DNA from: Adineta vaga
Taxonomy: Eukaryota; Animalia; Rotifera
Assembly (NCBI GenBank): GCA_021613535.1
Contig: CP075495.1
Span: 4,278,001 to 4,342,000, forward strand
DNA length: 64,000 nt
Direction of reading: 5' to 3'
A model generated the notes under the pieces. It ran no database searches. It was not told where the DNA came from and saw only the letters and a program-made list of their open reading frames with translations. This document shows, piece by piece, positions 7,436 to 61,500 of the stretch. The position numbers were made by a program, and so were the translations under genes. Positions within the stretch are counted from its first letter, which is position 1. Every line of letters starts with the position of its first letter.

Positions 7436-9728
<2,293 letters not shown>

Positions 9729-13500: not shown

Positions 13501-14560
13501 AAGAAAAAATCTCATCAATAAATAAAGAAGAAACGTTTTCTATTTCTAATATCTCGTACTTCAAAACATGTTCGAATTCCTGGACAAGTTGTCACGACCG
13601 ATGCCTTACAACGTTTATGTATCACACATGTGCATACTAAAAAAGAAAAGTAAATAAAAGATAGTTCATATTTGATATCGAAAACTTTAACATGCACCAC
13701 AAACAACGGTTTCTTTTATATAACCGTAATTTACAACACAAGCGCAAGTGATTCACTTGAAGAATACAAAAGTGATTGCAAAGCAACATCCATTCTTACC
13801 TTGACATTGATAACCTTGTGTACGAAAGATACCCCTGGAAAGATGTGATTATTTAATCTCATTTATTCATTTGATTTCTCAGAAGAAGTTTCTACTTGTC
13901 TTTTTCTTTTCATCTCTCTAGTTTTTTCAAATCGAAATCTTACCAGATAAATTCAGAACATATTGAGCAGAATGTTGGTTGCCGAAAAAATGTGGCCATA
14001 AATTTATGTCCATTGATTTCGTAAACACGACGTACAACGGCAAAACGTCGTTGGGCAAAAGCTCGTTTGTTTTGTTTGAAATGTCGTTCATTACTTACAG
14101 CTAAAAACAAAAGATGTTCTTTTCGATAAAGAAAAAAGAAACACATTCATTTAAACTCACAATCAGTAAATTGCCCTTGTAATTCAATTGCAATATGAAC
14201 TCGTCCAGATGGTTCAAGGTCAACCCAAATGTCACTTTTTTTATCATGAATATTTTCAAATTTTACCGTACAATCTGCAACATATTCATCCGGTGGTAAT
14301 GCAGCATCATGAAAAACAGTAAAATGTAATTGTTGACCATTATGGACATCACTGTTAAATTCTTCATTGAATGTTGGTGAAATTGTTTTCTCTTTCGTAT
14401 GAGTACGACCTAATGGTAAATCATCAATATCAATTGAGATATATGGACTAAGGAAAGCTGTTGAAGGATTTTGAGGAAAATAACGTGTTGAATGTTGTGT
14501 TGCACGAAGATCATCAGCTTCGATAAGTTTTAAAAGCATTTTACCATTGAAAACAACCAT
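10540..14560 (-). CDS. PRKCE: Novel protein kinase C, epsilon/eta type (C2-C1a-C1b-kinase, multi-exon)
   Basis: N-terminal MVVFNG C2 domain, pseudosubstrate [10 protein letters not shown]1 domains [17 protein letters not shown] and [35 protein letters not shown] split by intron 11651-12038, TFCGTPDYIAPE, hydrophobic motif FKDFSY. Confidence 0.93.
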
Positions 14561-15487: not shown

Positions 15488-16408
15488 ATGAATGAAGAAA
15501 TATTTTTCATATCAATTGCTAGTATTTTTAGTTTATTCAATATTATTACAATTATCTTTTCATTGATTATTTTTTGTACGATTATTTTCAATTGGCATCG
15601 ACATTTTCGTTCCGTTTCAAATCTACTCGTTTGTAATTCATCATTCGTGTTTATTCTATATACAATTAGTTGTTTTATTCAAACACCATTAATGCTTTCG
15701 AAAATGTATATTAATTCAACATTTTGTCAATTCTATGGATTTTTTACATTATATACTGCTGGAACACATATCTTTACATATCTTGCTCAAGCTATATTTC
15801 GATATTTTTCAACGGTTCTTTATCGACGAAAAATTCTTTTAACATTTCGTTTAAATATTATCATTATTCTTTTAGGATGGATTATTCCTTTCAATGTTAC
15901 AGGTAGTCTATTAGCATTATCATCAACTTATCAATATGAACCTGAATCACGTATATGTTTTAGTTCAACAAAACAATTTCTTCCTTCTGTCATAATCAGT
16001 TCCATTATTTTCTTCATGCCCTTACTTACTATCGTTGCTTTATATGGATTAATTCTTTGGAATTTAACTCAATATAATCGAGATCAAACAACTAGTATCA
16101 ATCATATTCGTTATAAACGAAATATGAAAGTATTTCATAATATACTTATTAGTGTGTGTATAATACTTGTTTGTGGAATACCATATATTCTTTCTGTAAT
16201 TACAAATGCTATAGGTCAATCACCATGGATATTATATTCAATGACAATTTTATCAATTTCATTAGCTACGACATTAGATTCGATCGTATTATTCTTTACA
16301 ACGGATAAAATTAGAGAAATATTTAATGAAAAAATCAGTTTTTATCAATTTGAAATTCCTGGAATACAATTTCGAAGAACAAATCAAATAGCACCAGTTA
16401 TTAGTTAA
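15488..16408 (+). CDS. Orphan class-A GPCR, tandem copy 1 (intronless)
   Basis: 7TM pattern; NLLVCN in TM2, FCQ at TM3, QAIFRY (DRY equivalent), YEPESRIC in ECL2, CGIPY in TM6. Confidence 0.85.
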   Translation: MNEEIFFISIASIFSLFNIITIIFSLIIFCTIIFNWHRHFRSVSNLLVCNSSFVFILYTISCFIQTPLMLSKMYINSTFCQFYGFFTLYTAGTHIFTYLAQAIFRYFSTVLYRRKILLTFRLNIIIILLGWIIPFNVTGSLLALSSTYQYEPESRICFSSTKQFLPSVIISSIIFFMPLLTIVALYGLILWNLTQYNRDQTTSINHIRYKRNMKVFHNILISVCIILVCGIPYILSVITNAIGQSPWILYSMTILSISLATTLDSIVLFFTTDKIREIFNEKISFYQFEIPGIQFRRTNQIAPVIS

Positions 16409-16885
16409 ATATATCGGAAAAGAAATCAACTATGAACTATAGAAATGATTAAAAACTGTAGTACCTTTTCTTTCTTATATTTATATTTTACAAACATTGA
16501 ACTTTTTTCATCATGGATTCAAATATTTTTACTCTTACAATCTCATTAAAAACATAGCAATCTTTTTTCTTCCTAACATTAGAATGTTTTTTAGACAAAA
16601 GAAGATAATATCGTTATTAAAAGGAAATGAAATTTCATAGCAGTCTACTTCTGAATTTTTCATTTAGTTCTTTACTCTATGAACGTACTTAAAATCATGC
16701 ATATTCAAGTTCCAATCATGACAAATTTAATTGTTTGAAAGTTTTCTGTAATTCAACCAAGCTTGTTAAAAAAAACAGATTTTGTCATACTTAAACAGAG
16801 TCATTTTACTCATAAGTCAGCAGTAATAATAATAATAACAATTTCTTTTAAATGAAAGACAAATTGTTCATTAAATTGTGATATT

Positions 16886-17824
16886 ATGATCAGTGTAGAT
16901 GTTTTCTTTTCAATTGTAACAATAATCTTTATTATATTTACATTGATAACACTTAGTTTTTCATCAATCACTATTTTTACAATACTTTCACATTGGAATT
17001 CACAATTTCGATCAATTACATATCTTTTAATTTGTAATTCTTGTTTTACTCTTCTTTATTATACTGTAACAGTCATTATTCAAATATTATTTCTTTCAAA
17101 AACAAATTATCCTTCATTTTTTTGTCAATTTCGTGCTGCACTTTATTTTAGTTCATGTGTAAGTTCAGCTTTATCATATCTTATTCAAGCTATTTCACGT
17201 TATTTTATTACAATTCTATATAAACATCGAATACTTCTTACATTTCATATTAATTCAGTGTTAATCATTCTTAGTTGGATAATTAGTTTCATATTACCTG
17301 CATTAATGTTCATTTCACCTGTAGCCTATCAATACGAATACGAATCTCGAATGTGTATATTAACGACGAAAGTTTTTCATACATCATTTCCTGCAGTTAT
17401 CATAGTTTTTGTTATTCCATTGAACATAATTATTATTCTCTACATTTTAATTCTTCGTCAATCATCACAACACAATCACACATTTCCAGATACATTTACA
17501 AGATTACGAATGAAACGAAATCTGAAAGTATTTCGAAATATTCTCATTTCAATTATTATACTCACGATTGGTGGTACACCGTTTTTTCTTTGTATTATTT
17601 TCAATGAAATAGTAGATATTCCATGGCAACTACATTCATTATCATTACTATTCATATCTTTTTCTGCAACACTCAATTCATTGGCACTCTTCTTTATCAA
17701 TAACCCAATACGAAAATTATTTTTCAAAAAAATTAATTGTCAACAAAATGCAAATAGAACTAGAACGATACAGATTGGTCAAGTACTATCAGAATCGATG
17801 CAAATGTCACCTATTCTTGGATAA
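16886..17824 (+). CDS. Orphan class-A GPCR, tandem copy 2 (intronless)
   Basis: Clear paralog of 15488-16408: YLLICN, FCQ, QAISRY, YEYESRMC, GGTPF. Confidence 0.85.
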   Translation: MISVDVFFSIVTIIFIIFTLITLSFSSITIFTILSHWNSQFRSITYLLICNSCFTLLYYTVTVIIQILFLSKTNYPSFFCQFRAALYFSSCVSSALSYLIQAISRYFITILYKHRILLTFHINSVLIILSWIISFILPALMFISPVAYQYEYESRMCILTTKVFHTSFPAVIIVFVIPLNIIIILYILILRQSSQHNHTFPDTFTRLRMKRNLKVFRNILISIIILTIGGTPFFLCIIFNEIVDIPWQLHSLSLLFISFSATLNSLALFFINNPIRKLFFKKINCQQNANRTRTIQIGQVLSESMQMSPILG

Positions 17825-20225: not shown

Positions 20226-21152
20226 TCATTTGGATTCACTTGAACTTGATCGTGAATATCGACGTTCTTTTTTCTTGGGTGATTCAGCAGTATTTCCACT
20301 TGCACCTGCACGTCGACTAGATGCTGGTGGTGATTGTCCACGTCGATAATTTCTTGATGGTGGTGAATATCCACCTCGTCGATCATTGTATCTACCACGA
20401 TCACGATCTCGGTCACGATCGCCTCCTCCTCGTCGTGATGACGGATAATGACGTGATGGTGGTGGCAATGGCGAACGTCGACGTCTTCCATATGGTGATC
20501 GTTCTCGACGATTTCTATCCGAAGATAAATGTGATGGTTGTCCATGAACAAGAACGCAAACAATTTCTTTTCCATCTATTTGTCCACCTTCCATATATTT
20601 ACATGCTTGTTCAGCACCATTTGCTGTCACATATTCAACATGAGCGTAACCACGATGAAGATGCGAATGAATACGATGTGATGGTAATTCAATCTCTTTG
20701 ATTTCGCCAAATGTTCCGAAAATCTCTGTTAAATGATCTTTATTAACATTGAAAGATAATTTACCAATATAAATTTTTGTTGCTTCTTTTTCTTGTCGAT
20801 GTGATGACGGACTAGCACTATGACTGCGACGTGTTTGATTATTTGATTGAGTATTCTTTTTACCATCGGTTATATCTCGTTCTACGGATTTTTTATTCGA
20901 TGCTTTGTTATTATTATTAACTTTTGTCGAACTATCTTTTTTCTTTTCTGGTGATGATGCAGCTGATGATGAACGACTAGTCGATGATGATGAATTCGAC
21001 GAAGATGATGAAGATGAACGACTCGATGCTGATGAAGAACTTGTTGAACCTGATGAACTAGAACCACTGGAGCTTGAACGTGATGCACGTTTGCGTTTTG
21101 TTTTCGATGGTGATTCTTTTGAATTTTTTATCGTATCCGTTTCAACTGTCAT
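20226..21152 (-). CDS. RNPS1: RNA-binding protein with serine-rich domain 1 (EJC/ASAP component)
   Basis: Ser-rich N-terminus, RRM 'KIYIGKLSFNVNKDHLTEIF...RGYAHVEY...KYMEGGQIDG', RS/P-rich C-terminus. Confidence 0.92.
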   Translation of the reverse strand: MTVETDTIKNSKESPSKTKRKRASRSSSSGSSSSGSTSSSSASSRSSSSSSSNSSSSTSRSSSAASSPEKKKDSSTKVNNNNKASNKKSVERDITDGKKNTQSNNQTRRSHSASPSSHRQEKEATKIYIGKLSFNVNKDHLTEIFGTFGEIKEIELPSHRIHSHLHRGYAHVEYVTANGAEQACKYMEGGQIDGKEIVCVLVHGQPSHLSSDRNRRERSPYGRRRRSPLPPPSRHYPSSRRGGGDRDRDRDRGRYNDRRGGYSPPSRNYRRGQSPPASSRRAGASGNTAESPKKKERRYSRSSSSESK

Positions 21153-36845: not shown

Positions 36846-38972
36846 TCACATGAATCTATTCGTTGTTATTAATATCTGCTGAGATAATAGATTAGCACAT
36901 AGTGTATTATAATGATTTTCTGCTACTTGTTTTGCTGTTTGTTTATCATTATTCAATTGTTCAATGAGAAAATGTTTTGCTTCAGTATCCAATTTTGTCA
37001 AAATATCTTCCAGTGTCTTTTTCGCTTGATCATGGGTTATTTGAGCAAGTATATGAAAAATATTATTGCCTAATGTATCAGTTTGTTTGATAAGTTCTGG
37101 TCGTTTTTGTAAGATTCTTTCGATTAATTTCGTACGATTAAATTTTGCTGCAAGTATCAATGGTGTTTCTCCCTGAAAATTCATTTGTTCAAGATAACTA
37201 TTTGTATTCTCAATAAGTTGTAAGGCAAGATCGATATTTCCTTGTCTTATAGCATTATCTAATACCAAAATTTTATCTTCAAATTGACTTGTTGATATAG
37301 TTTCAACATTTCTTTCGGTCTGATTTGATGATAAATTAAAAAAATGAATTTGATCGTCTTCATCATCTTGAAAACTAGTCAGTGATCGTTTTTTCGTAGT
37401 TGATAGTGAAAGATTTACAGATGTTAAGTCCGAATTGCAAACAAGACATGTATCTACTGAATACAAGAAGAAGAAGAAGCATAGTTTAGTATAAGATAAA
37501 TCAGTACAAACATGATAGATAAGTAAATTGAACTCGAATAAGTTCTTTATCATTTAGAGTAATAACAATTGGTATAGAGAATCTTGGATGATTTCTTGTT
37601 AATTGTACTGGACATGGTGGTGTTGAGAAGGAGATAGTTTTTTCATCAACATAATCTCGATGAATCGATGCTTTTGGATCAAATGTATGATGTTCGAAAC
37701 GAATATTCAATTCTAAAAGAAAATATAATAAAGAAAAATGTTCATATATGTAGTAGATATAGGGTTCAATCTTATTTTCTGATATAAAGAACATTATATA
37801 TTTTAAGTGCATACTCAAAAATAAGATTGCTTTTTACGATTTTAGACATCGTTATTCATACATTTACTTAATTTTACGCTCTAACATTAAATACAAAGTC
37901 CTTCTGTTATAGATACGTTTTCATACTTTCTATCTTTATGATTTGTTATGTCATATAGATAAGACAACTCAACTACCAGACGACGAGATATATGAAATAA
38001 AATATTTTTAACCTCGATAGATTTTTGTATATTTTCATCATTTCATTACAGAAATTAAAATTGAAAAATGAATTACTTTTTCGTTTATCAAGTTGTGGAA
38101 TAAACATTAATATTTCATCACCACCTTTACAATCTCCTATTTGAGGTGCATATCGAAAACATGTATCATTGTCATTTGATGGTGTTGTCGTGCCAGTTAT
38201 GACTTGTGAAGAAACTGTTGAAACATAATATGTCACTGGTAATTCAGTTTGACGTTCGATTTCAAAAGCAGCTAATGAAAAAACGAGTTGAGATTGGTAT
38301 AATTGATAATATTCAATCGTTTTTCTAGCATCTGATAAATCGATTCCAGTCGGTCGATGATATTCTTCTTTGAAATATTGAAAAGAGAAACATTTCAATA
38401 TCAAACATACGAAAGGAATATTCTGTTTTACCAGCATTGAGAATTCTCAATGGTCCATGATCTTTTAATTCACGATGAGTTAACTTTTGTAGACAAAAAT
38501 GAAAACTGAAAAAAAAAGTAATTCCTCAATTAAACTTTTATTCAATTGAAAATTCCAACCTTTTTCGACCAGTTTGAAGTTCGATATCTGATATAGGAAA
38601 ATATAATGAATTGGTAATTTTATGACGAATAACATCATCTTCTTCTGTAGCGAGTATATATGGATGTACACAAATTAAATTAACCCGTTCATTAGGTACA
38701 GTAACAAGTCCCAAACGAATATAATAACGTCGTATATTTACAAGCCATTCTTTTGGAATCTATATATAGGAATTGAAAAAAAAATAAAAGATAAATTCTT
38801 ATTTGCTTCTGCTTACCTCGACTGTTGGATACACAGTATTATGTGTATTCGTTTCTCCATGAATAAAACGTTGAGCTCGATTTTGTTGACGATTGATTTC
38901 ACGTATATATCGTTCTCGGTAGAATGCTTTCGGCTGTACCAAGATCCGAAGTCGTGGCATTGGTTCTGCCAT
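36846..38972 (-). CDS. R7: NF-kB p105/p100-like protein, subfamily C (RHD-IPT-CxxC-NLS-ankyrins, no acidic N-term)
   Basis: MAEPMPRLRILVQPKAFYRERYIRE...YPTVE; CVHPY; IPT 'RYAPQIGDCKGGDEILMF...ISFSTPPCP'; CLVC; KKR; ankyrins GETPLILAAKFN and GNNIFHILAQ. Confidence 0.85.
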
Positions 38973-40497
38973 TAATAAAAAAATAATCTCTAAATAAAAT
39001 CAAAATGGATAGGTGATAGAGGAAGTATACATATATATATATATATAATTGTTAAAAATGAATAATGCTTTTCAATTTACTTTCACCGGGGTGGGATTTT
39101 TTTCATCATAATTATACAAAAAAAGAAATGAAAGGAAAAAACATTATATACTACGTTTTTTTCCCTTCCTTTCCTTCTATGCAGAAGATAACAGTAAGAC
39201 AAAAAAGTTGTCTGATGCTTTAATCTATCAGTATACATCATAGTATATATATATATATTAACTTGATTTAAAATACTTACTGAGTTGAATTATCTTGCTC
39301 AAAAGTTTGTTATAATGTACATGTTTATTTGAAATCTTGACTTACTTTCAAAAATTTGTTTTTTTGTAAATGACATTAAAGTTAAAGATAAAACGTCTAC
39401 AAGCAGTTAGCTCTCTTTTTTATGCTTGTCAGTAAGGTAGTGTGATGAAAGACAAAATGATTTTTTATTTCAAATATTATTCATACGATATAGATATGCT
39501 GATTCAGATATGAGTTAGTCATATTCATATAAGGAATATGCCAATGAATGTTGAAGTAAAAAAATACGTATGTAAATGCTCTTATAATAAACGACACATA
39601 TGCTTGTAGCAATAAAAAAAATGTCCGAAAAGTCTTCTATTAACACTTCGATTTATAGAAAAATGGTACTAAGTTTTTTTCGACTTTACACATAATTCTC
39701 AATATTTAAAGAACTTCTTCTATAGACAACGTTTAGAAAAGTGATATCAATAATTAATCTGATAATCTATAGTTCCAGTCTAGAATTATAATAGATTTTC
39801 TACGATCTCGATCGAGCAAAGGAAATTCTCAAAAGAATATCCGATTAAAACAAGATGTTTGCTACCTACAATACTTTATAATGAAATAAAAGTAGGTATT
39901 TCGAGGGGTGGTATTACGTTCCGCGAAAATTCACAGATGCTTTCAAAGTACAAATTCATGCAAATAAATATTTTTTGTCTCTTTTCCCAATGTTATTTTA
40001 CGATGAATAAACTGATTTGTACATGCCTTACATATGCAACATTTTTTTTTCGGCGATTTTATTCAACCTCTAACTTCAAGGTCATTCTGTTGTTTTTTAT
40101 CATATTAATGTTTTAACATATGTTCAATACATTTCATATGTCTGTTGTTTGATTAAAATGATCATTTATTGCTATATCACTTCATACTCATGGGATATCA
40201 ACTTTTGTGAATTCTATTAGAATATCAGTCCTTAACGTTGAACAAAAGTGTACGGTGATTCTTTTAGAATTACATGTTTAATTCGTTATTTTACATAAAA
40301 AATAAAAACGAAAATTTTCATAAGCGAATGAGACTGTTCATAAATGTACATATTCTTTCAGTTATGTCTGTCAAATTAACTTAAATGATAACAATTCATT
40401 TTATATGAATATTTGACTAATTTATAGTTTTATGAAAAGAAAAATACGCACAACTTTTGTTTCTTCTTGTAACCATAGTGATACATGAGATTCTAAT

Positions 40498-40848
40498 ACA
40501 AATATAGTAATATGAAGCATTAGAACGAAACAAAATTTTAATTAAATATATGGGAAGATCTTTTATTAATCAGGAATTTTCGATCATTATCAGCTGTACC
40601 GCGAATATGAACATTCAAGAAAAAGAAAGATGTTACACAAGAAATTAAAACAAATATGAAATTTGATATTAATAACTTCATTTTGATCTAATTTAGTTTA
40701 GTTTCTTGTATAATATCTTTCTTCTTCCTGAATGTTCATGTTCGTGGTACAGTTGATAATGATCGAAAATTTCTGATTAATACAAGATCTTCTCATATAG
40801 TCAACTAAAATTTTATTTCGTTCTAATGCTTCATATTATTATATTTGT
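40498..40848. repeat. Long imperfect inverted repeat (fold-back), arms ~155 bp, loop ~35 bp
   Basis: 40498-~40655 (acaaatatagtaatatgaagcattagaacgaaa...cgatcattatcagctgtaccgcgaatatgaacattca...) is the reverse complement of ~40691-40848, with differences that are mostly transitions. Confidence 0.92.
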
Positions 40849-40976
40849 TTCTTCTTGTTTATGTTTAATCGAACATTTTCAAATACAATCAGTTGATGGT
40901 AATGATATTGACCTAACGATCATATTCCAAAAATAGATAGATTCTTTTCATTCATGATAAATATTTGAAAATATCT

Positions 40977-41330
40977 TTATTTGATGATAGATCTTGTTAC
41001 TGGAATAAACAATGAACGATGCTGTACTCTGGCATGGTTATTGTTAATAAAAATTGAACACGAATGAAGAAGTAAAAGTTGCTTATCACTATGTGAAAGC
41101 CTTGTAAGTGTTATACGCATCCATAATGATATGTCAGATCTAAAATGACTTCGAATATCAGACGTCAAGTTCTCATAAATGAATTCGAGATTATCAAAAC
41201 AAAATATAACTATTCACTTTGATAGTAATTGATTGTCTATTTGGTACAGTGACGTGTTTTATTCCATCCATTTTCATATCGAGCATATTGTTACAAAAAA
41301 TGAAGATATCAAAAAGACTAATGAATTAAG
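40977..41330 (-). pseudogene. Degenerate RHD pseudogene of subfamily B
   Basis: YARYE followed by a +1 frameshift, then DGIKHVTVPNRQSITIK|gt (cf. R5 RFRYRSDGIRY...PMTIE|gt), with an in-frame TAA just upstream. The next exon LWMRITLT...LLLHSCSI...HRSLFIPVT matches the equivalent R4-R6 exon and ends in a stop. Confidence 0.6.
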
Positions 41331-42516
41331 AGTTCGAATGAATTGTATTCTAGTACTGAAATTTATCATATCGTTGATATTCTACTTAGAAAATGAGATA
41401 ATATCGAACAATATTCACGGATGATTTGATAATGGATGGCATCTTTGATGTTTGCTTCTTTTATTTGTTAGTTTCATCAAATGGAAATATCATAAATCAA
41501 TTGCTGTTGCACTGCAGCAAGATCTACGAAATGTAAACGAATGCTACATAATAATGAGTTATATAAATATACATCTATTGGAATGTAGTGCCTTCATTCC
41601 GATTGTTTTTCGATAATGATGCCAAATAGTTAATAATCTTGTGTGAATCATCATCAAATATTTTATTGTAGTGAGTATTCAGTATCTAACAAAGTTTGAT
41701 TAAGATCGATCTTTTGTACTATCGAGTGTGTATAAAATTGGTTCTTCAGTCAATAGATTGAGCGAATTATTACACAATAAAATTATTAAGTAAGATTTAG
41801 ATCTTATTTATTTGCTGAAACTATTCAAAAGTAACAGATCCGTTGACGTTGCTACAAGAAATGCATTTTATCGGAATCATCAAAAATTCTAAATGGAGCT
41901 GCATAGTTATCGTTTTTAGGCTAATAATTCATGCTAAATGAAGATTTTCTTATATGAATAGCGATTTAATTGAATTATACAATTACTTATTGAGCTATTG
42001 ATGCTTTGTTGTGTACTGATTGTAAATAGTTAGACTCAAGAGGACGCTATCATTTGAATCGAGTGCATAGATACAACAGACAGAAGCAGGTGACACCACA
42101 ATTTACATGGTTTTTCTAGCTTTACTTCTTTCTCTTTTATCTATTCATTGCTTTGCTTTGTTCTCTTGTACTGTGTCATTCTCAAACCTTTGCATTACTC
42201 ACGAGTTGTAAAAGAAAAGATAAAATCTAGATTTTTGAAATAAATTCATATCATTATGAATCAAATGAATGTGTCATAGAAACTAATGTTACACACTTAA
42301 AAAAGAACGTATGAAAGTATACCTTTTGTTACACGCAATTGCCATAATATGAGTTTATTGTTTATTTCTTTATTATATATGATTATTTAAGAACAAAATA
42401 TGAGAAAAGCCATTTCATTTTCATTAAAATCAGAAGAAAGTAAGATATTTCGAATAAGATAAAATCTAACTACAAAAAAAATAGAAATTAAACAAACAGT
42501 ATGACATATCATTTTG

Positions 42517-45329
42517 TTAAGCATTCTGCTGATTATTCGTTAAAAGTTCAAAACAACGTGTATTTCCATGCAATTGTGCTGATTGAGCCGGTGTTTCATT
42601 CATTTTGTTCTCCTGTTTCAATAGATTGTTTTTCAATTTTTCAGACAGAATTGCTAAGATACTTTCAATTGCTTCAGCACCTGCATCTTCTTTCACATTT
42701 GCAAGTAAATGTAACATATTGTTACCATCATTATCTTTCGCTTCAATCACATCTTCTCGTTCCTTCACAATCAACTCAATCACTTGCCATTCATTACATC
42801 TTGCACCAACTAATAATACTGTTTCGCCATTTCCATTTCTTTTCTCTAACAGATTATTTGGTTCACGCATATTAGCCACTTGTTGAATTATCGTCGATAC
42901 TAATGGAATATATCCATGTTCAATAGCATCATGTAATGGTGGTGGATTTTCGTCACAGGTTGATAATAGAACACGAGTTCGCCGAAATAGTTTTGATGGA
43001 TCATTTGTTCGAACAAATGCGACTAATGCTTCTTGTAATTGATTGAGATATTTATCGAACTTAGCAGAACTATCTATCAGTTGAGAGAAGAGAAAGAGTG
43101 AGATGAAGTATTGTGAATAGGATGCAATGTGTCACAAACCATCGGTTGTTGTTGTTGTTGCCATTCTTGCTCTTGTTGTCGACGCAAATGATGGTTCTTT
43201 GTTTTTCTGATGAAAAAAATAAAAAGTATAGGCGAACATGATGGACAATAAAGAGAGAAGAGAACAAACCTCGTCAAGTGTGAGTTTACTCATGTTTTGA
43301 ATGATATCACCACCAGAGTCATCCTCACAGAAAAGGTCGGACCCACATCGTCTTTTATTGCTATTGTACAGCTGATTTGACACCGTTCTCTGTCGACAAT
43401 TTGGACACTCATACATGATTATTTTCCTCGCTAAAACACATATTGGTTAAAGCAGATCGATAGATCCACATACTAAAATGACATACGTGTCACATATGTA
43501 AAATCAATGGGAGCCAAATCGAAACCATCTTCATTAATGATCATTTCCACTTTAATATCTTGATCTCCAATAGGAAGTGAACATGGTGGTGCCAAAAACG
43601 AGAATGTTTTCTGATCCACAACAGAGATCTTATCGACACGTATTAATCGATTTAAACCAAAATTAAATAAAATATAATAGCCTTCAAAAATAATCAAGAA
43701 ACTTATTTGAGTATGAGAAAAATACAAACCAACTAACTTATCTTTTTGATGAGGTGTGGCATAACAACTAATATTTCATCGCCACCTCGATAATCAGCTT
43801 TTTTTGGTACACATTTGATTGAAGTAGACGTTATGTGATCAGGACAATTCGTATTTGATCCTTAAGAAAGGAAAAGAAAAACTCTATCACCATCTTCGCA
43901 CATTTATACGTACTTGCTCTATCTGTTGTTATATCAGTCATAACGTCAGATTCAATCGATGTGTGCCATTGTGGAGTTGGATACGGTTCACAATCTAATC
44001 GTTCAGCAATTGTAAAGAAAAGTTGAGACTTTCCCAACTGATATGTCTCAATAGTTTGTTTAACATTTTGTGAATTTTCAATACGTTGTTCATTCGATGA
44101 ACCTAAATATACGAAATTAGTATCGTATATTGTATCAATATAATATCTTAGTTGTTCCTACGATTGAATAGTATCATAGATCGATACGATCGTAATTCTT
44201 CTTGTCTCTTTTTAATTATAGTCAGTCGAAAACTAAACATATATATATAAGCATATGTCAAAACTAACGAGAAACAAAATCATAAATGTAACCATTACCT
44301 TTTTTCACCGGACTTCATCTCCTTGTCATTGACACGAAAATAGAGAGTATTTTGTTGAGATGCATGTTCAAAAGTATCATTATCTATTGAACTAAGCTCA
44401 TATGGATGAATATAATGATTATGTACTGTATCACTAGTTACAGTAACAAGATTAACTTGAATATATATTTTCCGATCTAAAGAACGCCACGCGTCTGGAA
44501 TCTAGTTTTTACAAAGAAAAAAGATTTGATTAGTTATGAAATTGTATAAGATACGATAAATAGTAAATTTATATTATTTCAAATTAAACTTTGAAATAAA
44601 TACTTTATTATTGTTCCATGTATTTTGAGGAAAACTACACATACCCTAATAGTTGGATATTGATGCATTCTGCTTCTTTGTCCTGTACGAATAAAACGAT
44701 TTGGTTGACTATTTTGATTGCCTTGTTCGCAAACATAACGTCCACGATAAAGTGGTTTTGGTTGAGCTATTACTTTAAGTTGTTCATTGTTGGATCGATC
44801 GAATGCGTTTTGTAAAGGAGCCATAATTAAAGGACTCGTTTGCGGTTGCTGATTATTCAAATCAGAAAGTAAATCATTGAAACTATCATCAATACCTTCT
44901 AATCCTTCTGCAGAAACAGCATCGGAAGCAAAGCCTGATGAACTTGAAGAACTTTGACTGTCTGAGATAGGAAATTCGAGACTATTCGTATTTGTAGTAT
45001 CGTTATCTAAAATGTGTATATAGATTATTTAAATAACAAAAAAAAATTAATGAATTATTGCACGTACTCGTATTATTATTATTATTATAAAAAAATGCAT
45101 CTAAATCTTAAAATAGAATTTAAAAATCAATTTTTTTAATATCAATCAAATCTACTTTCTAATTCGGTAAAATGCTCTGGTTCCACGTTTAATAAATCTG
45201 GTTCTAGTAGAAGTATGCTATCGGCTATATCTTGATACAGTAACAAATCTGTTTCTATCGAAAGAAAGATTATACAATAAATTAACTCTACTTGAATGAA
45301 TAAATACCCGAATAGTTTAAGCCAGCCAT
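42517..45329 (-). CDS. R8: NF-kB p105/p100-like protein, subfamily C
   Basis: LKVIAQPKPLYRGRYVCEQG...YPTIR; HYIHPYEL; IPT KCVPKKADYRGGDEILV...FSFLAPPC; CPNC; NKRR; pre-ankyrin helix; ankyrins GETVLLVGARCN, GNNMLHLLA and NETPAQSA. Confidence 0.87.
42673..43280. repeat. Near-identical dispersed duplicate, copy 1 (partner 49834-50440)
   Basis: Nucleotide-level near identity with 49834-50440, including introns. Confidence 0.93.
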
Positions 45330-46366
45330 TTTGTTCGTTGTGCAATTTTGATAAACAATTTTTGATGGTATGTTAGAGCGAATAATGTTCCTTCCGCTTT
45401 TATACGAGGAAGATTTAGATAAACGTAATTGCAAGCAGTATTTCTTTTTAGCTCATGACGTGCTGGAACTTTCCCCAGACAGAACGAAAGAAAAACAATA
45501 CAATGCGATACATGCGAAATAACAAAATATAGGTCTCTCTCGATAAGATAAGAACATTAGTAGAGAGACGTCCGAGCAGCATACAAAACACGATGGTATA
45601 CATTACTGAATAGATTCAGGTCATGCTTGTAATCAAAGAAAAGGATAAAGTTTAAGATAGTATTAAGTATATCAAGTACTTTTTACAATAACGGGAAATA
45701 AGATTAGAATAGAAGTAATGAACAATTCAGTGATGTTTCGTTGTTATTTAGCTCTGCTGAATACTGATGAGTACGATAAGTAGCTGAATATAGTGTTTAA
45801 TCTTTTTACAATTTGAATCATACATAAGAAATTTAATATAGATCGATCGATGCATTTGATATTTGTCAGTAGACTATGAACTTTGAAAGATCAATATATA
45901 TTTGGCACATTTCATATGAAAAACATGATTACTGAAGATAATATTATAATAAAAGAGAAAGTATCAGCTAGAGATGTGCTTCTGATTGAGAGAAACACAT
46001 TGGTAAATATTTGATTCATTCATTTATATCATATTAGAATATTAGACAAGAAAACCTTTTCATGTTGTCTATTGGAATTATATACTTATTTCCAGCATGT
46101 TCTTACATATAAAATTGTTTTTTTATTTTCTCTTTTTGTTTCATATGACTATTTTGATGAGAAACTTGATAAGGATCACTTTTTTTCATGCAATTTTATT
46201 GGTTCGTATCAATTTAAATGCCATCATTTAATCACATAAAATCAAAATACATAAACATAGATGGAAAAGTTGGGAGAAGAGTAGGATTACAAAACATCAA
46301 AGCATCATATTCCTGAATAAAATAAAGAAAGACCGGGTTCAGACAAAACAATCTTGTGAAAGAACA

Positions 46367-49362
46367 TTATTCATTCTCTGCATCATCATCATCATCATCA
46401 TCCGACGAACTTGTATCGTCGGAAATGTGTTGTAGAGGATAAATTGTTTGTAAATATTCCGTTATATCATCAAGATGTAGTGATTGCGCTAATTCCATTG
46501 GTGTCATAGTTAAATTACTTTGATTACCAATTTGATCTAATTTTCCGTCTTCAATTAAATATTTAATCATTTCTAAATCACTGTAACGAACAGCAAGATG
46601 AATGAGATTATCACCAGTTTGATTCTTTAATTCCTGTACATTGTTTTTGAAATATTTCAGAATATTTTTTGTAACTAATAGATTATTCTTTGAAATACTT
46701 AATTGTAATGGAGTTCGATGATCTTGATTTGGATGATCGAATTTTTCTTGAATTGAAAATGATTTTTTCAAACAATAATCAACTATTAAATCAATTATTT
46801 CAGTTGATATTGAATATAATGCCATGATATGAAAAATATTATTTTCCTTTTCATCTGTACAGTTCATCAATTCTTCCGAATCTATTTTCTCTAATAATAA
46901 TTTAACTATTTCTACATGATTGAGTCGAACAGCATGTAAAAGTGTATTTTCGCCCATATTGTTTTGGTTTTGAAGAATATCAATAGAAGCAATAGGAATA
47001 AATTTGGATAAAATATCAATATGATTTTTACTAATAGCAACATGTAATGATTGAGGTTGTTTTTTGATAAAAGTACGAGATAAACGAAGAAGTGGACCAT
47101 CATCATTATTTATAAATAATGACTCCACAACTTTAGAAAGTATTTGCATAATTCCATCCTTAGGATTTTCATTGACTTGAGTAGTTTGTATTGGTGAGAC
47201 AGGAGCTGAAATAATAATACAAATGAAAAGTATATCTTGACATTTATTCTCTGGAAGTATATTCGAATGAAGAATAAGACAGCGCTGCTTACCAGAGTTT
47301 GAAACTGTTCCTGCCGCTGCTGCTGCTGTTGTTGTTGTTGATGATGATTCAGGTAACTATGCGAAATATATAGTTTTTTCGAATGCATTGTGAAAAATGG
47401 AGATGTAACTTACAGGTTCAGATAATGATTCATGAAGTTTAGGAGAATTACCATCATTAGGTACAACACCATCATCCATATAAAACATATCAGACGCCAT
47501 ACGTTTATTTGGTCTGTTTGGTGTTGCATTATTTTGATTTATGATAGCATTCAATTGACAATTTGAACATTGATTTACTAGTAAAGCGAAACAAAAGACG
47601 AATATTTTATTTGAAGGAAAAATATTGACATTATTCCTTAAATTACCTGTTGGCATATAAAAATATGATATAGTTCCTATTTCACGAGTATCTTGTCGAA
47701 GGATAATATTCACCGGAATGATTTCATTGAATTGAAAAGGAAATATAGGTATTTTAAATGAGACAATTTGATCTTTGATAGTCAGATCGTTAACTGGTTG
47801 TGACCAATGTGGATTGACAGTATCACATTCGAATATCACTTTTAATACTGTAAAATGTAGTTTAAAAATAATAATTTCAAATCATAATCAATTCTATTTT
47901 ACTCACCTCCATATTTTTTTGGTTCAAGTTTTTTATCCGTCAAGATAATAATCATCTCTTCGGAATGTGTATTTAGACTGTACCGAGGTGCATACTTATA
48001 CACACGACAAAGAGGGACAGATGTATTTGTTCTATTGTTTACTGGTTGAGTATTATTTTCCGAATCTTTTCCTTTCGAATCAATTTCTATCATAATTTCA
48101 GAGAAAGCAGTAGTTTCTAGAAATGGAGTTATACATAATGTTTGATCTTGATCGACTTCTTTTTTAACAATAGTAAATGCTAGTTGACTTTTTTCAAGAC
48201 TATATCCTTTCTTCAATTGTTTTGGCGGGAGTTGTTGTGATTGAGCATTATCTTGTACATTTGAATCTAAATTCCAACAACAAGATAATTAATTCTTTCT
48301 TTTTGTCATTCAGTTTTCATATTTACAAACCATAACAATCGAATATTCGTAAATCTCCATACGCTTTCAATTCATTCTGTAATTTCTTTACAATTCGTAT
48401 TGATGGAAAGCTACAATATAAAGTTGAATAACTTTAACAATTGATAGAATTCTTCCGTACCTTTTAGTACCAGTTATATAATCTTCTTTCTGAATAGGAA
48501 CATAAACTGAATTATAATATAAATCATTTAATTGATCGTCAGTCGTATGCTCGAGTGAATACGGATGGATATAACGTAGATTAGTTTTATCGTTGATGAC
48601 TGTTACAAGACATACACGAACGTGATATGCTTGATTAGGATCAAGATATTTTTGTGGAATCTAAACAAATAATAGCAAAAGTTAATTCAAATCACACGTT
48701 AAACATACTCGAATAGCTGGTCCATTGTAATTTGAATTTTTAGTACGATTTTTTAATACACCTTGACGTTGATCGTTGTTGTTATAATCAGTTCGATAGC
48801 GTAGTTTTTTTCCATAATATGGTTCAGCAATGATTTCTATTTGTTCAGAATATGATTGCGTTAAAGCAAAGTCTTGAACACCAGCTAAATGAAAAGAAAA
48901 ATTCGTTATGAGAAATTGATTTATTCTAATATACTATTTGATATTTCTTGTTGATTTGAATTCGAGTTATTATCTGGAGAATAACCCGCTGGAGTTTGTG
49001 CATCTAAACCTAGGCTACTAAATCCTGGTGTTAACGGATCGAGATTGAGAAAGTTCTCTAAATCTAAAATAAAAACTTAATCTTAAAGAGATTTTTCTTT
49101 CATTTCCAAACCAGCATTGGTAGTGAAGTCAGAATATTGTCCTATAATGAGAAAAGATTATTAATATAATATTTTTTATTGATATTTCCATACAAAAAAC
49201 TATATTACCTATTGAATCTTCGAAGAATGAGAGCGATGTACTATCGAGAAAATTGGAATCTAGTTCAACAAACCAACAAAACTAAATAGATTATATTCAT
49301 ATATTCTTCTTATTATTACCAGTAGATAAATGGGTACTGCTTTGATTATTTGAACTTGTCAT
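46367..49362 (-). CDS. R9: NF-kB p105/Relish-like protein with full IkB-like tail, subfamily C
   Basis: IEIIAEPYYGKKLRYRTD...GPAIR; RYIHPYSL; YSLEKSQLAFTI; IPT RVYKYAPRYS...EEMIIIL...VSFKIPIFP; CSNC; RPNKR; polyQ; about 6 ankyrins (GENTLLHAV, ENNIFHIMA, HRTPLQLSI, GDNLIHLAV, TMTPMELA); acidic PEST-like end SDDTSSSDDDDDD. Confidence 0.87.
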
Positions 49363-49650
49363 AATGCTGTTTCAATAAATGTAATCTACAATGAAAAATC
49401 TATTTCGATATGAGAATATATATCTCTTTTTTTTCTTTTTATTATTTATACCGAATATATATATACATATATATACATACTGACTTTTTTGAAACAGGGA
49501 AAAAACAAGCTTTGATTTGTTAACACATTTGAGTCATAGAAACAACAGTATTTTCGATAGGTTGATGATTATCGAATGATTTTATTTGAAAAAAATTGAC
49601 AGAAAAACAGAATATGAACATGAAAGAGACACACATAGATTATATTTATC

Positions 49651-52648
49651 TTACAGACTAACTAAATAATTATTGATTTCATTCGAATTTGCCGCTTTGC
49701 TTAATAAACTCAAACATTGGGTATTTTCATGGGATTGTGCAATGTCTTTTGCGACTTGGCTTTTTTTATTTTCTTCTTTTAAAAGTCGCATTTTCACATC
49801 AATAGGTAAAATCTCGAGGAGATTCTTAAGTGTTTCAGCACCTGCATCTTCTTTCACATTTGCAAGTAAATGTAACATATTGTTACCATCATTATCTTTC
49901 GCTTCAATCACATCTTCTCGTTCCTTCACAATCAACTCAATCACTTTCCATTCATTACATCTTGCACCAACTAATAATACTGTTTCGCCATTTTCATTTC
50001 TTTTCTCTAACAGATTATTTGGTTCACGCATATTAGCCACTTGTTGAATTATCGTCGATACTAATGGAATATATCCATGTTCAATAGCATCATGTAATGG
50101 TGGTGGATTTTCGTCACAGGTTGATAATAGAACACGAGTTCGACGAAATAGTTTCGATGGATCATTTGTTCGAACAAATGCGACTAATGCTTCTTGTAAT
50201 TGATTGAGATATTTATCGAACTTAGCAGAACTATCTATCAGTTGAGAGAAGAGAAAGAGTGAGATGAAGTATTGTGAATATGATGCAATGTGTTACATAC
50301 CATCGGTTGTTGTTGTTGTTGCCATTCTTGCTCTTGTTGTCGACGCAAGTGATGGTTCACTTTCCTTCTAATGATAAAAATAAAGAAGATAGGCGAACAT
50401 GATGGACAATAAGGAGAGAAGAGAACAAACCTCGTCAAGTATGATTTCTCTCATCCCTGAAACGATAGCTTCAACAACGGGGATGACGTCATTAGATTCC
50501 CGTGGTCTTTTATTGCTATTGTCTGTTTCTCTTGCCATCATACTTGGCTGACAATTTGGACACGCAATCATAGTAACTTTCACCGCTAAACATAGAAACA
50601 AAATAGAAAGATGAAAGAGTCCTATGTTCGATGAGACGTACGTCTAATATATATGAAGTCGATATAACCTAAGTCAATATCATTCTCATTGATCACCATT
50701 CGTACTGTTAAATCGTGATTACCGACGGGAAATGGACATGCTGGTGCGAAAAAACAGAATGTTTTTTGATCAATAGGTGTGATATTTGTCACTACTATTG
50801 GTTCAGTTAAAGGAAAATCAAATATAATGCTATACGCTGCAAGAATGAAAAGAAATTATTGATAAGTGAAAAAATGAAGTACAACGCACTTTTGTTTTTG
50901 ATTGAATGTGCCATGGTGATTGCTATCTCTTCACCATCTTGCCATTGAGCTTTGCGTGGAATACATTTGATTAAGTTGAGAGCTGTATGATTAGCATGAT
51001 TCCTTGCTAATTCTTAAAGAAGAAAAAGTAGTAATACATTATACCTAAAAGGAAAACTAACGTTTTTTGTCAGCTTCTTCACCAACCATAATTTTAGATT
51101 CAATGGCGGTATGCGGTATGGTAATAGGAATTGGTTGCGAATAAGTTCGTTCAGCAATAGCGAATATAAATTGAAATTTGTGTAATTGATATGTAGCAAT
51201 TATCTCTTTCGGGTTTCCTATGTCTGGAACATGTTGATTGCCAAACAGATCTAAATTTACGACTCTGAATAAGATGATCCCACATTATCTTATAGAATTT
51301 TTCTTGGTTCTCAGAAATCCTATGTAATTGAATGCACTATCTATCTATCAGGTTTTCATATTGCGTCATTCAATCAAAGGAAAGAAGGATTGTGCACGAA
51401 AATCTTTTTTATTGAAGTATATTATGCACATCCTTATCATGAAATTCAATGCATTTTATTATAGAAAGTGGATAACCAATATATATATATCAATTGATAA
51501 AATTCCGAAGAAAATTTCTATCAAGGATATTGCACTGTTGAATTTTATGAAAACGTAGTTGATTCTCATCGCATTTTAGTCTACGCGTAACTTCAATATG
51601 ATTGTGATTGACTATATACTTACTTGTTTCATATTTTCGTAATGGTCCGTATTCTTTCAAATTTTTTTGAAGCATTACTGTTTGAGTTATTTGGAATCTA
51701 AATAGATAGATTTTAGAACAGGTTTAAATCAATATGTATCACTTTACTTTTTCTCACAGGTATTGAATTCTTCCGGTTGAATAGGAAAATACAAAGAATT
51801 GTTACCATCGTCAATGAAGTCATTTCCTTCGGCACCAATTTTATAAGGATGTATATAATGTTCTCGTATTTTATCTGTTGTAATTGTCACTGGTGTGACT
51901 TTAATATATAGTTCTCGTGACAAATCACACCATTTTCGTGAAAACTGTTGAAATAAATTGTAGATATGTAGAAGAACTACTCGCTATTTACCTGAACAGT
52001 TGGATATTCGTATCTAGGATCTGCAAGACCAGTTCGAATAAAACGATGACCTTGCCCATTAGCTGTTTTTGAATCAGTAGCATATCTTAGACGATAAGAT
52101 TCATTTGGTTGTGCGATTATTTTAAGTCGATCACCATTTTCTGCGTCAGATATATTAGGCAAGATGTTTATATTCGAAATTGCGCTTCCTTCATTATGAT
52201 ACGCGGGTGGTGTATCAACATTGTCAAGTTGAGGTAAAGTACCCCCAGGATAATTCTGCAGAAATTCTGTAAAATCGACAGGATATTCAAAATCTTCAAG
52301 AAAAAGTGTTTCTGTAATCGTCGATTGCTGTGGAGAATTGGAACTACTACCATTAGATGTTCCAACACCTTGTGGAGTTAATATTGAATCTACACATAAA
52401 AATATTTTTATGGAAACAAAATTACTTTTGATAAAGTCTTGCATACTTTGCGAATCTAAACAATAATTAAGATTACAAAAAACTTGAATCTTTGTGAAAA
52501 ATACATTTACCAAGAAGCTGGTTTACTGCTTCCATAATTGGCGAAGGTATATCAAGATCCAGGCCTAGTAACAAAAGATAAAAAGATGTATTGTGAAAGA
52601 TTTTTTCGTCAGTGAACAAAATTTACTATCAAGAATATTGTGCGGCAT
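49651..52648 (-). CDS. R10: NF-kB p105/p100-like protein, subfamily C
   Basis: RLKIIAQPNESYRLRYATD...RYEYPTVQ; HYIHPYKI; IPT KCIPRKAQWQDGEEIAI...FCFFAPACP; CPNC; NKRPR; ankyrin exon shared with R8. Confidence 0.85.
49834..50440. repeat. Near-identical dispersed duplicate, copy 2 (partner 42673-43280)
   Basis: Same sequence as 42673-43280 apart from a few substitutions. Confidence 0.93.
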
Positions 52649-58500: not shown

Positions 58501-61500
58501 CTTACTGTTTCCTATACAAAATGAAAGTTAAATAGTGAATTTTTTTATTCTGTTGAAAAACGCAAATAAACTTTTTTCTAAAATATCTTATGATAATTAC
58601 CTTGATTTTAACTTCAGTTTGTTTGACTTCGAATAATTGTGCTAAGCTTTCGGTATCTATTTTCACTTTATTTAGTGATGTCCAAAGACAATCATCGGTT
58701 CCCGATGTAGTTGACATCGTATTTGGAGCTGCTTCACGCCAGTGTAAACGTATCGTTTTGACAGATTTATCGATCGCTTGTGCTTTTGGTACTGGTGGTG
58801 GAGGTGGTCCACCGTTGCTCATGCCCATCGGTGGTGGTGGTGGTGGTGGTGCCATACCTCTAGGCATAAATGGAGGTGGAGGTGGTGCACCACCCATCAT
58901 TGGTGGTGGTGGTGGTGGAGGAGGAGGTGCTCCACCCATTGGAGGAGGAGGAGGAGGTGGAGGCGGTGGACCACCACCTCCCATCATCGGTGGTGGTGGA
59001 GGTGGACCAGCACCACCTCCCATCATCGGTGGTGGTGGAGGAAAACCTGGTCGAGCACCTACAGTAAAACCCATAATATTTGCATCATCTCGTTCATCTA
59101 ATTCTTCAAAATTAAGATCTTGAACAATTAGTTTCCTTGAAAGAACTTTTCCAACAACAGTTTCCCATTGAAGTTCATTATCAGTACGAGGTTTTGATAG
59201 TAATGCATCAGGCATTTGAGCAGATAAACCAACACCGGGTATTCCAGGTATTGGTGGTTTTGTTGTTGCTTGTGACAAACCTATAGAATATTACATATTA
59301 AATCATATTAAAAACGTATTCTGCACGTAAAACGTACTATCTTTAGCTCGTGTGACAGTACCCATGAGTTCTGATGCTGGTGTTACTTTTGTATCTTTGA
59401 CTACAACATTTGGCTGACCATTGATTGCTGATGTTTCATTTCCACCCATGGATGTTAAACTCATTTGACGTGTTACTGCTTCAATACCACTGCTACTGGT
59501 TGAACTTTTCTGATGAGCCAATGGTGGCCGTGAAAATACTTTTGGTTCATTCGTATGAGGACTCTGTGATTGTTGTTGTTGCTGCTGTTGGAACGATGAT
59601 TGTGAAGCTGAAGTTGCATCGACAGTGGCTGATGGACGTGTAAAACGAGTGGACGGAACAGTTTGACTATCAACAGTCGGTGGTGACTTAAGTTCTAGAA
59701 AAATATGAAAGATTTTTATTTAGATCAAATAGTCAAGAAGTTGATTTATTTACGTGATTGTTGTTGATTTTGTCGATTCGTATCTGTTGATGGCGTTGTT
59801 GGAGCATCATTTGTTGCTGCTGCTGCTCCCCAACGATCACGACCAGTACGTCCTGGTGCTGTAGCTTTTGGTACTTGAGCTTTGGCTGCCGCAGCTTCAC
59901 GCTGTTGAGTTTCTGCTTCCCATCGATTTTGCATTCGACGTATGGCACTACTATCAGGTGGTGGAGCTGCTACTTTCGGTCTAAAAAATGATTTATTTCC
60001 ATAGAAAATAACCTTTCTATTTTCTCTTACACTTCTTGTTCTCTCTTCTGAGGTAATGGAGGTGCTCCCAACGAACTACGTCGCATACTTTGTCGATCAT
60101 TTGTAATACTTTTCACTCGTGTTTTTCGTCTACGATAAATTTGTTAAATTCATTAAAAGTAGACAACAAATTTCAAGAAGCAATATTCAAAGAAAGCAAA
60201 AGAAAATTGTGCAAGGAGAAATGAAAAATGTGTTTTGTAAAAAAAAGCAAAGCATACTCATCACTGTTATGTTCGTCATCGTGTGACGTAGATGAAATAT
60301 CGCATCCATTCGATGAATTCGTCATATCATCATCACCATCATCATCATCATTATGATTATTTTGTAGTAACATTGTAGGAATTAAGTTAAAATGATTTCC
60401 ATCAGAATGACCATTATGATGATTATCAATCATCATACTTTCTTGTGGACTATCATAGTAACCAGTGGAATCATAATCAAACGATGAATATCGACGTGAT
60501 GAAGTTCGTTCGAAAGTTGATTTTGTACGTGGCACACGTCTATTTAAAGCGATAAGCATGGGGTTTTTCGTGGAAGGAATACAAACATGCTGGTCCAAGA
60601 TAATTAATCACAAATCGATAAAGCTGCTCTAGCAGAATTTAGGAAGGGATATTTGAAAGAATTTATTTTGAAGAAGAAAAGATAAACCCAAATGAAAGAT
60701 CTAGATACCTTTTTTATGGACGATTATCCTCAGAAATTTTGCTCTCAGAAAATTTTTAGAAGAAGGAAAAGCTTTCGCCAAAACGTCATCATGCATAGAA
60801 AATAAGCGTATATATCAGTAATCATACCTTATTGATTGAACAACTATTGCTTCGTCATCACCATCTTCATGTCGAAGAGCAGCCTAAAGTAAATTACAAA
60901 TTACAATACATCATTTTTAAAGAATAATATAATAGATCTTTCTCTGCTTTTGATCACTTTGAAGAAAATATCTACTCATGATGAGTTCACGAAATCTCGA
61001 TTATAGATAGTGAGACAAAGCTTTAAAGTTCGAATAACGAATTTCGATTTGAACTGTCCTTATCAATTCTAGAAAAGATAGTTTTCACAAAAAGAAACAC
61101 TTACATCATATATATTAAACTGTTCAACGAGATCTGGTTCAGGTGGTTTTCGATTAAGGAAAAATTGTGTACATCGTTGCATTCCTTGCTTTTCTAATGC
61201 ATCTGTCATATCATAAAATGTATCTTGATCAGGTATGGCTGATAAGACTGTATTAAACAATGTGATTATTAATAGAACAACTTCTGATGCTGAATTATCC
61301 ATTTCATTTAAAATTTTCATAGTATTTGACCATAATAAACGTTTTGCTGCTCGATCGACATGTGTTACAGCTGATAGTATTAATAAAGCATTCGTTTCTG
61401 TATATTCAGCAAAGACAATTAAAAGTTTTAAACTCGTTTTAACAACTAATCGAAACTAGAAAGAAAATAAATGAATGGATCCTATTTCATATCATCTTCA

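Follow-up and report, generated by a model that had tools for sequence, protein, structure and literature searches.

We find that a 64,000 nucleotide (nt) window of the bdelloid rotifer Adineta vaga (contig CP075495.1, positions 4,278,001 to 4,342,000) carries four co-linear genes on its minus strand, R7 to R10, each of which encodes a Rel homology domain (RHD), an IPT domain and C-terminal ankyrin repeats. In our judgement these are, with a probability of roughly 60%, paralogues confined to bdelloids that belong to the self-inhibited type of NF-kB precursor (the p105/p100/Relish architecture), among which R9 is the conserved and most complete member, and R7, R8 and R10 are shortened derivatives that possess the first four ankyrin repeats. 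The layout is common to all four: RHD, IPT, an invariant CxxC motif, a Lys/Arg pair, a disordered Ser/Thr-rich linker, and ankyrin repeats (Table 1). A preliminary description made from the letters of this stretch alone had proposed four RHD-IPT-ankyrin genes of the Rel/NF-kB family, and this identification is borne out by the family profile and the fold match of R9 described below. The peptides quoted in that description as lying just before the ankyrins are present on the minus strand, with QEALVAFVRTNDPSKLF starting from 50196 (R10) and 43035 (R8), and VVESLFINNDDGPLL from 47131 (R9).

Each gene model links stop-free segments across GT-AG introns of 47-361 nt, in a window with a G+C content of approximately 30%. 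For R9, the NCBI protein I4U23_007143 (P0094, Adineta vaga, 778 amino acids, aa) maps to 49362-46370, spans RHD through ankyrins in a single frame, and reproduces every exon junction that we derived independently from GT-AG sites. R7, R8 and R10 were searched exon by exon, with orthologous database proteins standing in for full lengths: P0022 of Rotaria (485 aa) is co-linear with R7 from 38972 to 36966, the Adineta ricciae protein P0016 aligns with R8 from 44935 to 42538, and P0001, P0016 and P0093 align co-linearly with R10. Proteins of other bdelloids are co-linear over all exons of each window gene (full-length matches of 485-816 aa). Moreover, R8, R9 and R10 have a common exon plan with the same intron phases, in which the recognition-loop exon is followed by a second RHD exon (YIHPY), two to three middle exons, the C-terminal IPT exon, an exon encoding CxxC and the Lys/Arg pair, a mini-exon rich in Ser, Thr and Ala, and a single long exon for the ankyrins, and the intron after the recognition-loop exon is identical in position and phase in all four genes. 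In R7 one exon holds linker and ankyrins alike, in a single frame, so that no splice prediction is needed to join them, while in R8 and R10 the halves are connected by in-frame GT-AG joins and full-length orthologues carry both. Predicted full-length proteins with both halves occur in A. ricciae, A. steineri, Rotaria and Didymodactylos. An artefact in which unrelated neighbouring genes have been merged is ruled out by the common exon plan and by the single exon that holds the linker and ankyrins of R7. The 5' end of R10 is uncertain, its start at 52648 being the placement of the preliminary description. A separate observation concerns the intron after the IPT exon, the retention of which would lead to a stop within 3-7 codons in R8 (43476-43490), R10 (50625-50645) and R7 (37504-37515; all minus strand), and so to an RHD-IPT protein that lacks CxxC, basic patch and ankyrins alike; in R9 this intron (69 nt) is open and in frame.

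Standard domain models scarcely register the RHD of these proteins. Pfam searches of the R7-R10 exons matched the ankyrins and left the RHD almost unseen (one exon match, E=0.036), and on Adineta proteins PF00554 (RHD_DNA_bind) stays below its cut-off (at best 22.4 vs 27 bits, on P0016). A search of the whole A. vaga genome (100.8 Mb, six contigs) with PF00554 gave zero matches, in a run that its control shows to be unable to demonstrate absence. A Didymodactylos relative, P0050, which also bears ankyrins, does pass the Pfam model RHD_dimer PF16179 (31.7 vs 28.3 bits). To judge from its sequence, the RHD family of R7-R10 is very divergent. Exon profiles built from four sequences retrieved from PDB only NFAT5 (E=0.09) or nothing, and a 12-sequence RHD-IPT domain profile was needed for matches to appear. 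With this family profile the matches were p65 (3e-8), RelB (1e-7), p100 (1e-3) and p105 (1.4e-3), with NFAT5 at only 0.33 and a single non-Rel chain listed, at E=2. The alignment takes in the recognition loop and the whole dimerisation domain, which at profile positions 163-317 pairs with that of p65 and of RelB (E 3e-8 to 1e-7). Additionally, a template-free AlphaFold model of R9 is confident for both RHD-N (residues 100-295) and IPT (residues 325-421), the latter a beta sandwich with a predicted local distance difference test score (pLDDT) of 75-87, and Foldseek matches this model to p50, NFAT1, p65, p52 and c-Rel at E ~1e-11 over ~340-370 columns.

The recognition loop of Rel/NF-kB proteins follows the pattern R-x-R-Y-x-x-E, and the corresponding exon of the bdelloid genes aligns to the p65 segment R-F-R-Y-K-C-E. 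The loops read R-G-R-Y-V-C-E in R8, R-E-R-Y-I-R-E in R7, R-L-R-Y-A-T-D in R10 and K-L-R-Y-R-T-D in R9, such that R8 retains all five p65-equivalent positions. Positions of the p65 loop in contact with DNA are thereby retained or conservatively replaced in R7-R10, namely those of the two Arg, the Tyr and an acidic residue (Glu or Asp). R8/R10-type orthologues (P0001 and P0016) also show, at residues ~308-415 of the IPT region, weak Pfam similarity to the DBB motif known from Dof, BCAP and BANK (E ~1e-3), which we take to reflect a related TIG-like fold.

The family appears in our searches as a bdelloid one. A profile of the second RHD exon, run against 1.84 billion representative proteins, gave 75 matches, and all 20 clusters that were looked up proved to be bdelloid (A. 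ricciae, A. steineri, A. vaga, Rotaria species and Didymodactylos); nearly all full-length relatives bear C-terminal ankyrin repeats. Word searches with full-length alignments likewise returned only bdelloid proteins and no canonical NF-kB, and a literature search found no paper on rotifer NF-kB. Within the A. vaga genome a second cluster lies on contig 5 at 13.10-13.12 Mb (13100001-13119000), where at least three RHD-IPT-ankyrin genes and one RHD-IPT gene share 25-45% protein identity with the window genes, and single family members occur on contigs 1, 3 and 6. In A. ricciae, gene models fuse an R10-like with an R9-like gene, and because such neighbours are fused there, the adjacency of R10 and R9 is evidently conserved. 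Automatic naming in UniProt has given the A. ricciae and A. steineri orthologues of R9, as well as relatives from Didymodactylos, the name 'Relish'. Some of the Rotaria socialis members (P0109, P0111, P0115, P0117) are labelled 'RanBP2-type domain-containing protein' in UniProt, which suggests that Rotaria possesses fusions of the RHD with RanBP2 zinc fingers.

The region between IPT and ankyrins holds the most uniform feature of the family. A CxxC motif directly after the last IPT strand is present in 13/13 aligned linkers, from three genera and all three paralogue groups, and a Lys/Arg pair (KR, KRR, KRPR or KKR) lies 12-18 residues past it in all aligned members. This pair sits where NF-kB has its nuclear localisation signal, and may serve as one. 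It is followed by an acidic/aromatic patch with Asp, which in several members takes the form x-E-aromatic-D and then Gly or Ser; this Asp motif recurs across paralogues and genera, and we regard it as a lead towards a putative cleavage site. The linkers of R7-R10 comprise ~60-90 residues, and that of R9 is disordered in the model (residues 426-516).

In p105 and p100, a glycine-rich region (GRR) lies between RHD and ankyrins, an IKK/beta-TrCP degron of the form DSGxxS is present, and a death domain follows the ankyrins. The linker exons of R7-R10 contain no GRR, with at most 1-3 Gly per 20-residue window and 1.5-5.7% Gly overall; Pfam detects no death domain on the exons or on orthologues, and the proteins end within ~25 residues of the last ankyrin repeat. 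The preliminary description had reported both the absence of the GRR and the presence of CxxC and low-complexity linkers in its place, and the glycine counts and the alignment of linkers agree with it on each point. It had further proposed a scan for IKK sites, which came out empty: neither DSGxxS nor the looser D[ST]Gxx[ST] occurs in any R7-R10 exon or in ten orthologues.

The ankyrin modules of R7-R10 and their orthologues are co-linear, with the first four repeats common to all and with two further repeats and a conserved acidic tail added in R9-type proteins. Template-free models give R9 a helix pair (pLDDT ~68-73), six repeats and the acidic tail, and give R10 a helix pair and four repeats, with a pLDDT of 83.5 for the module and only 53-70 for its helix pair. 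R8 aligns with R10, and R7 aligns over approximately four repeats and has no recognisable pre-ankyrin helix. The repeat numbers of the preliminary description (about six plus an acidic tail in R9, three to four in the others) agree with these counts, while the helix that it ascribed to all four genes has to be withdrawn for R7.

That description had also taken the helix as a mark of p105 ancestry, an argument that we were not able to sustain. A helix-only profile found no p100 or p105 chain in PDB at E<=10, in a library that includes 4OT9, the C-terminal p100 construct, and a profile of helix and ANK1 reached p100 at E=0.024, behind ~39 generic ankyrin proteins and with a score derived mainly from ANK1. 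Unrelated seven-repeat proteins (FEM1C, AnkB, gankyrin, DARPins) superpose on the R9 model from residue ~517-524, spanning the helix pair, which lies on their first repeat, and p100 (4OT9) aligns over residues 506-762 with Z 17.5 and a root-mean-square deviation (rmsd) of 6.3. Given that unrelated ankyrin proteins align across the helix pair in the R9 model, the pre-ankyrin helices behave as an ordinary N-terminal cap. Comparison of the helix pair with the repeats by hhalign, to see whether the pair could be a degenerate repeat, gave E 0.09-0.6, in a test of low power in which true repeats score only 8e-5 to 0.04 among themselves. Furthermore, the identical helices of R8 and R10 represent one observation rather than two, since both lie in the 97-100% identical tract listed in Table 1, which takes in the Ser/Thr mini-exon and an intron together with the initial two thirds of the ankyrin exon, in a pattern consistent with recent gene conversion. 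The helix is uninformative on p105 ancestry, and a more general caution of method follows, namely that a helix before the first ankyrin repeat is no evidence of such ancestry.

Modelled structures offer moderate support for assigning the ankyrins to the IkB/NF-kB class. Among 48,161 representative chains, all compared by structure with the R10 module, IkB-alpha ranks first (Z 18.9, rmsd 1.9, 136 residues; model residues 40-182 aligned to IkB-alpha 70-207) and IkB-beta second (Z 16.9), with the best unrelated chain at 15.8, and the Foldseek list has the same order. R9 residues 545-758 align to IkB-alpha 70-275 with Z 19.6, over 203/213 residues and all six repeats. p100 (4OT9) falls outside the top 50 for R10 and is 50th for R9. 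The preliminary description's view of the ankyrins as NF-kB-class consequently survives in part, carried by the top ranks of IkB-alpha and IkB-beta for the R10 structure, and receives nothing from the helix or from sequence matches.

A working model can be proposed from these features, in which the ankyrin domain would fold back onto the IPT dimer and, in doing so, mask the basic patch and block DNA binding, leaving the protein latent. Release would most likely occur through site-specific cleavage of the linker at the acidic/aromatic Asp motif, as in the caspase cleavage of Drosophila Relish; linker cleavage would be the most economical means of release, because neither a GRR nor a DSGxxS degron is present. 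Endoproteolysis of the Relish kind would be compatible with the recurrence of the Asp motif and with a large set of caspase genes. Indeed, the caspase repertoire of A. vaga is unusually large, with no fewer than 70 exon-level matches across the genome that exceed the Pfam cut-off for the caspase domain PF00656, several of them in small clusters (e.g. contig 4 at 9.606-9.663 Mb and contig 3 at 19.109-19.112 Mb). A search of the same genome for the IKK scaffold domain, which constitutes a weak test, detected none. A bolder extension, which we consider distinctly improbable in its entirety, is that bdelloids may run an expanded set of caspase-activated NF-kB precursors, in which CxxC motifs pair across the dimer as a zinc or disulphide clasp and the Asp motif is the site of cleavage. 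If true, the clasp would make dimer choice or release dependent on redox state or metal, a control point that to our knowledge is known in no NF-kB.

Several results weigh against reading R7-R10 as self-inhibited NF-kB precursors. By sequence, the ankyrins group with generic ankyrin proteins and not with IkB, p100 or p105: a word search with the ankyrin alignment brought up rotifer fragments, followed by generic ankyrin matches and no IkB, and an ESM Atlas look-up of the R9 ankyrin part led to generic ankyrin clusters. For R9, many unrelated ankyrin proteins come within 1 Z unit of the top-ranked IkB-alpha, which amounts to a tie. Rel-class chains (p65, RelB) outscore p50 and p52 with the RHD/IPT profile, a result that does not favour the NF-kB subclass; the full-length R9 model contains no confident contact between RHD and ankyrins (predicted template modelling score, pTM, of 0.36); the Asp motif is short and loosely aligned, its MAFFT alignment not being clean; and the gene models rest on genomic sequence and predicted proteins. 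Finally, at least one annotation pipeline left the RHD-IPT and ankyrin halves of R8 unjoined, NCBI having assigned the stretch 43293-42520 (minus strand) to a protein of its own, I4U23_007141 (P0151), with 215 aa and ankyrins only. Its first residue is a Met inside the R8 CxxC exon, eight codons from the exon end, and the NCBI model agrees with the two downstream R8 introns derived here. In itself, I4U23_007141 could reflect either a gene that the annotation has split or a distinct product resembling IkB-gamma. We are inclined to read the split as an annotation choice, because the 45 codons upstream of the Met form an open, in-frame stretch that specifies the CxxC and Lys/Arg pair common to the whole family, and because the equivalent exon is internal to the full-length NCBI model of R9 and to full-length models in four other species, although R8 may also give rise to an ankyrin-only product.

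Were that product real, each locus might have two products, with the RHD-IPT and ankyrin parts made separately at least for R8 and R10, either through retention of the post-IPT intron and an early stop, or through an internal start that yields a free IkB-gamma-like ankyrin protein. In addition to the NCBI model itself, such an arrangement would fit the frame through the donor after the IPT exon, which reaches a stop after 3-7 codons in R7, R8 and R10, and the presence in R10 of a Met at the place equivalent to the start of I4U23_007141. However, the open and conserved codons upstream of that Met, the inclusion of the CxxC exon in full-length models, and an R7 linker that needs zero splices to reach its ankyrins lead us to consider two products per locus very unlikely. 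A further alternative accepts single polypeptides and dispenses with their processing: R7, R8 and R10 would never be cleaved, and would serve permanently as dominant inhibitors of the IkB kind, or as cytoplasmic anchors, for R9 and other RHD-IPT partners through heterodimerisation of the IPT domains. These three genes have only four repeats and no acidic tail, none of the known processing signals was found in them, and they belong to a large family whose contig 5 cluster also includes RHD-IPT-ankyrin genes. Yet the recognition loops of all three are intact (in R8 at every p65-equivalent position), which would be unnecessary for a pure inhibitor, and the Lys/Arg pair and Asp motif are conserved in them too, such that this explanation seems to us highly improbable.

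The origin of the layout can also be questioned, given that a secondary fusion of a Rel-type (Dorsal/p65-like) RHD-IPT gene with a free IkB gene in the bdelloid stem would make the likeness to p105 convergent. The RHD/IPT profile points in this direction, with p65 and RelB at 3e-8 to 1e-7 vs p100 and p105 at 1e-3, as do the free IkB-alpha and IkB-beta that provide the best structural matches of the ankyrins ahead of p100, and the absence from R7-R10 of the GRR, the death domain and the C-terminal IKK serine degron of p100 and p105. However, the gap between Rel and NF-kB profile scores amounts to only ~5 bits and derives from vertebrate chains only. Moreover, the RHD-ankyrin layout already exists in Capsaspora, sponges and cnidarians, so that inheritance takes fewer events, and Relish is likewise without a GRR (PMC8677719). 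We therefore regard a fusion as unlikely, and retain the inherited precursor architecture as the preferred explanation for R7-R10.

Detailed accounts of NF-kB evolution exist for protists, sponges, cnidarians, insects and vertebrates, against which R7-R10 stand out as lineage-specific genes whose orthologues carry only automatic database names. With p105 and p100 the bdelloid proteins share the order of RHD, IPT, basic patch, linker and ankyrins, and R9 shares the cap and six repeats; they differ in the lack of GRR, DSGxxS and death domain, in a helix that alone finds no p100 match, and in an RHD/IPT profile that places p50 and p52 below p65 and RelB. IkB-alpha and IkB-beta are the closest structures to the R10 ankyrin module (18.9 and 16.9, vs 15.8), and R9 is co-linear with IkB-alpha 70-275; its acidic, Ser-containing tail sits at the place of the IkB-alpha PEST region, which we take it to resemble. 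Unlike IkB, the bdelloid ankyrins are fused to RHD-IPT and have no N-terminal DSGxxS, and sequence searches do not single out IkB. Drosophila Relish, like R7-R10, unites RHD, IPT and C-terminal ankyrins in one polypeptide with no GRR. The Adineta proteins differ from it in an RHD that falls below the Pfam cut-off, and the bdelloid family differs in its invariant CxxC after IPT, in the four repeats of three of its four window genes, and in forming tandem paralogues where Relish is one gene; cleavage, moreover, is something that we only infer for the bdelloid proteins. For Relish, the absence of a GRR and cleavage at an internal site are reported, whereas basal NF-kBs retain the GRR, and the Relish ankyrins are thought to inhibit the RHD until this site-specific cleavage removes them (PMC8677719). 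In basal NF-kB (Capsaspora, sponges, cnidarians) the C-terminal ankyrins inhibit DNA binding and nuclear entry, and the Capsaspora protein has five ankyrin repeats and no IKK target serines (PMC8677719). The RHD-then-ankyrin order is common to basal and bdelloid proteins, the latter being set apart by their lack of a GRR and by their multiple copies.

The bdelloid family may consequently be viewed as a natural experiment in rebuilding the design of an auto-inhibited precursor. Its value in this respect lies in the fact that the family is multi-copy and extremely divergent, has no GRR or death domain, has an invariant CxxC and comes in two ankyrin lengths, and also in the nature of the host, since A. 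vaga is reported to be without Toll-like receptors (PMC8609888) and its genome has many caspase-domain matches. The remaining genes of the window, given in the last rows of Table 1, have an ordinary appearance.

Table 1 Coordinates (positions in the window) of the four RHD-IPT-ankyrin genes, their principal exons and other features of the window
Feature	Position	Strand	Remarks
R7 gene	36846..38972	-	Start MAEPMP directly ahead of RHD; RHD-N, IPT, CxxC, KKR, ~4 ankyrin repeats
R8 gene	42517..45028	-	5' end uncertain; RHD-N, IPT, CxxC/KRR exon, Ser/Thr mini-exon, ankyrin exon
R9 gene	46367..49362	-	N-terminal low-complexity region, RHD-N, IPT, CxxC/KR, disordered linker, helix pair, six repeats, acidic tail
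R10 gene	49651..52648	-	RHD-N, IPT, CxxC/KRPR exon, Ser/Thr mini-exon, ankyrin exon
RHD recognition-loop exon	R10 51992..52126; R9 48706-48840; R8 44645-44779; R7 38817-38951	-	Exon alignment
Second RHD-N exon, motif YIHPY	R10 51750..51941; R9 48460-48660; R8 44298-44501; R7 38559-38759	-	Exon alignment
C-terminal IPT exon	R10 50643..50834; R8 43488-43679; R9 47648-47845; R7 37513-37710	-	Profile aligns to p65 and RelB dimerisation domains
CxxC and Lys/Arg exon	R10 50431..50583; R8 43270-43428; R9 47414-47575; R7 37299-37454 (first part of last exon)	-	
R7 last exon	36849..37454	-	CxxC, KKR, acidic patch and ankyrins in one open frame; Pfam Ank matches
Pre-ankyrin helix pair	R10 50119..50220; R8 42958-43059; R9 47060-47164	-	Two modelled helices
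Ankyrin exon	R10 49654..50232; R8 42520-43071; R9 46370-47206; R7 36849-37250	-	Ankyrin alignment and model
R8-R10 high-identity tract	~42700..43200 (R8); ~49860-50360 (R10)		~500 bp, 97-100% identical; flanks 52-75%
Hsp70/BiP-type chaperone	7800-9400	+	
C2-domain protein kinase	11300-14560	-	
Two tandem seven-helix receptor-like open reading frames	15488-17824	+	
Arg/Ser-rich RRM protein	20226-21152	-	
Proline-rich, formin-like protein	58502-59278	-

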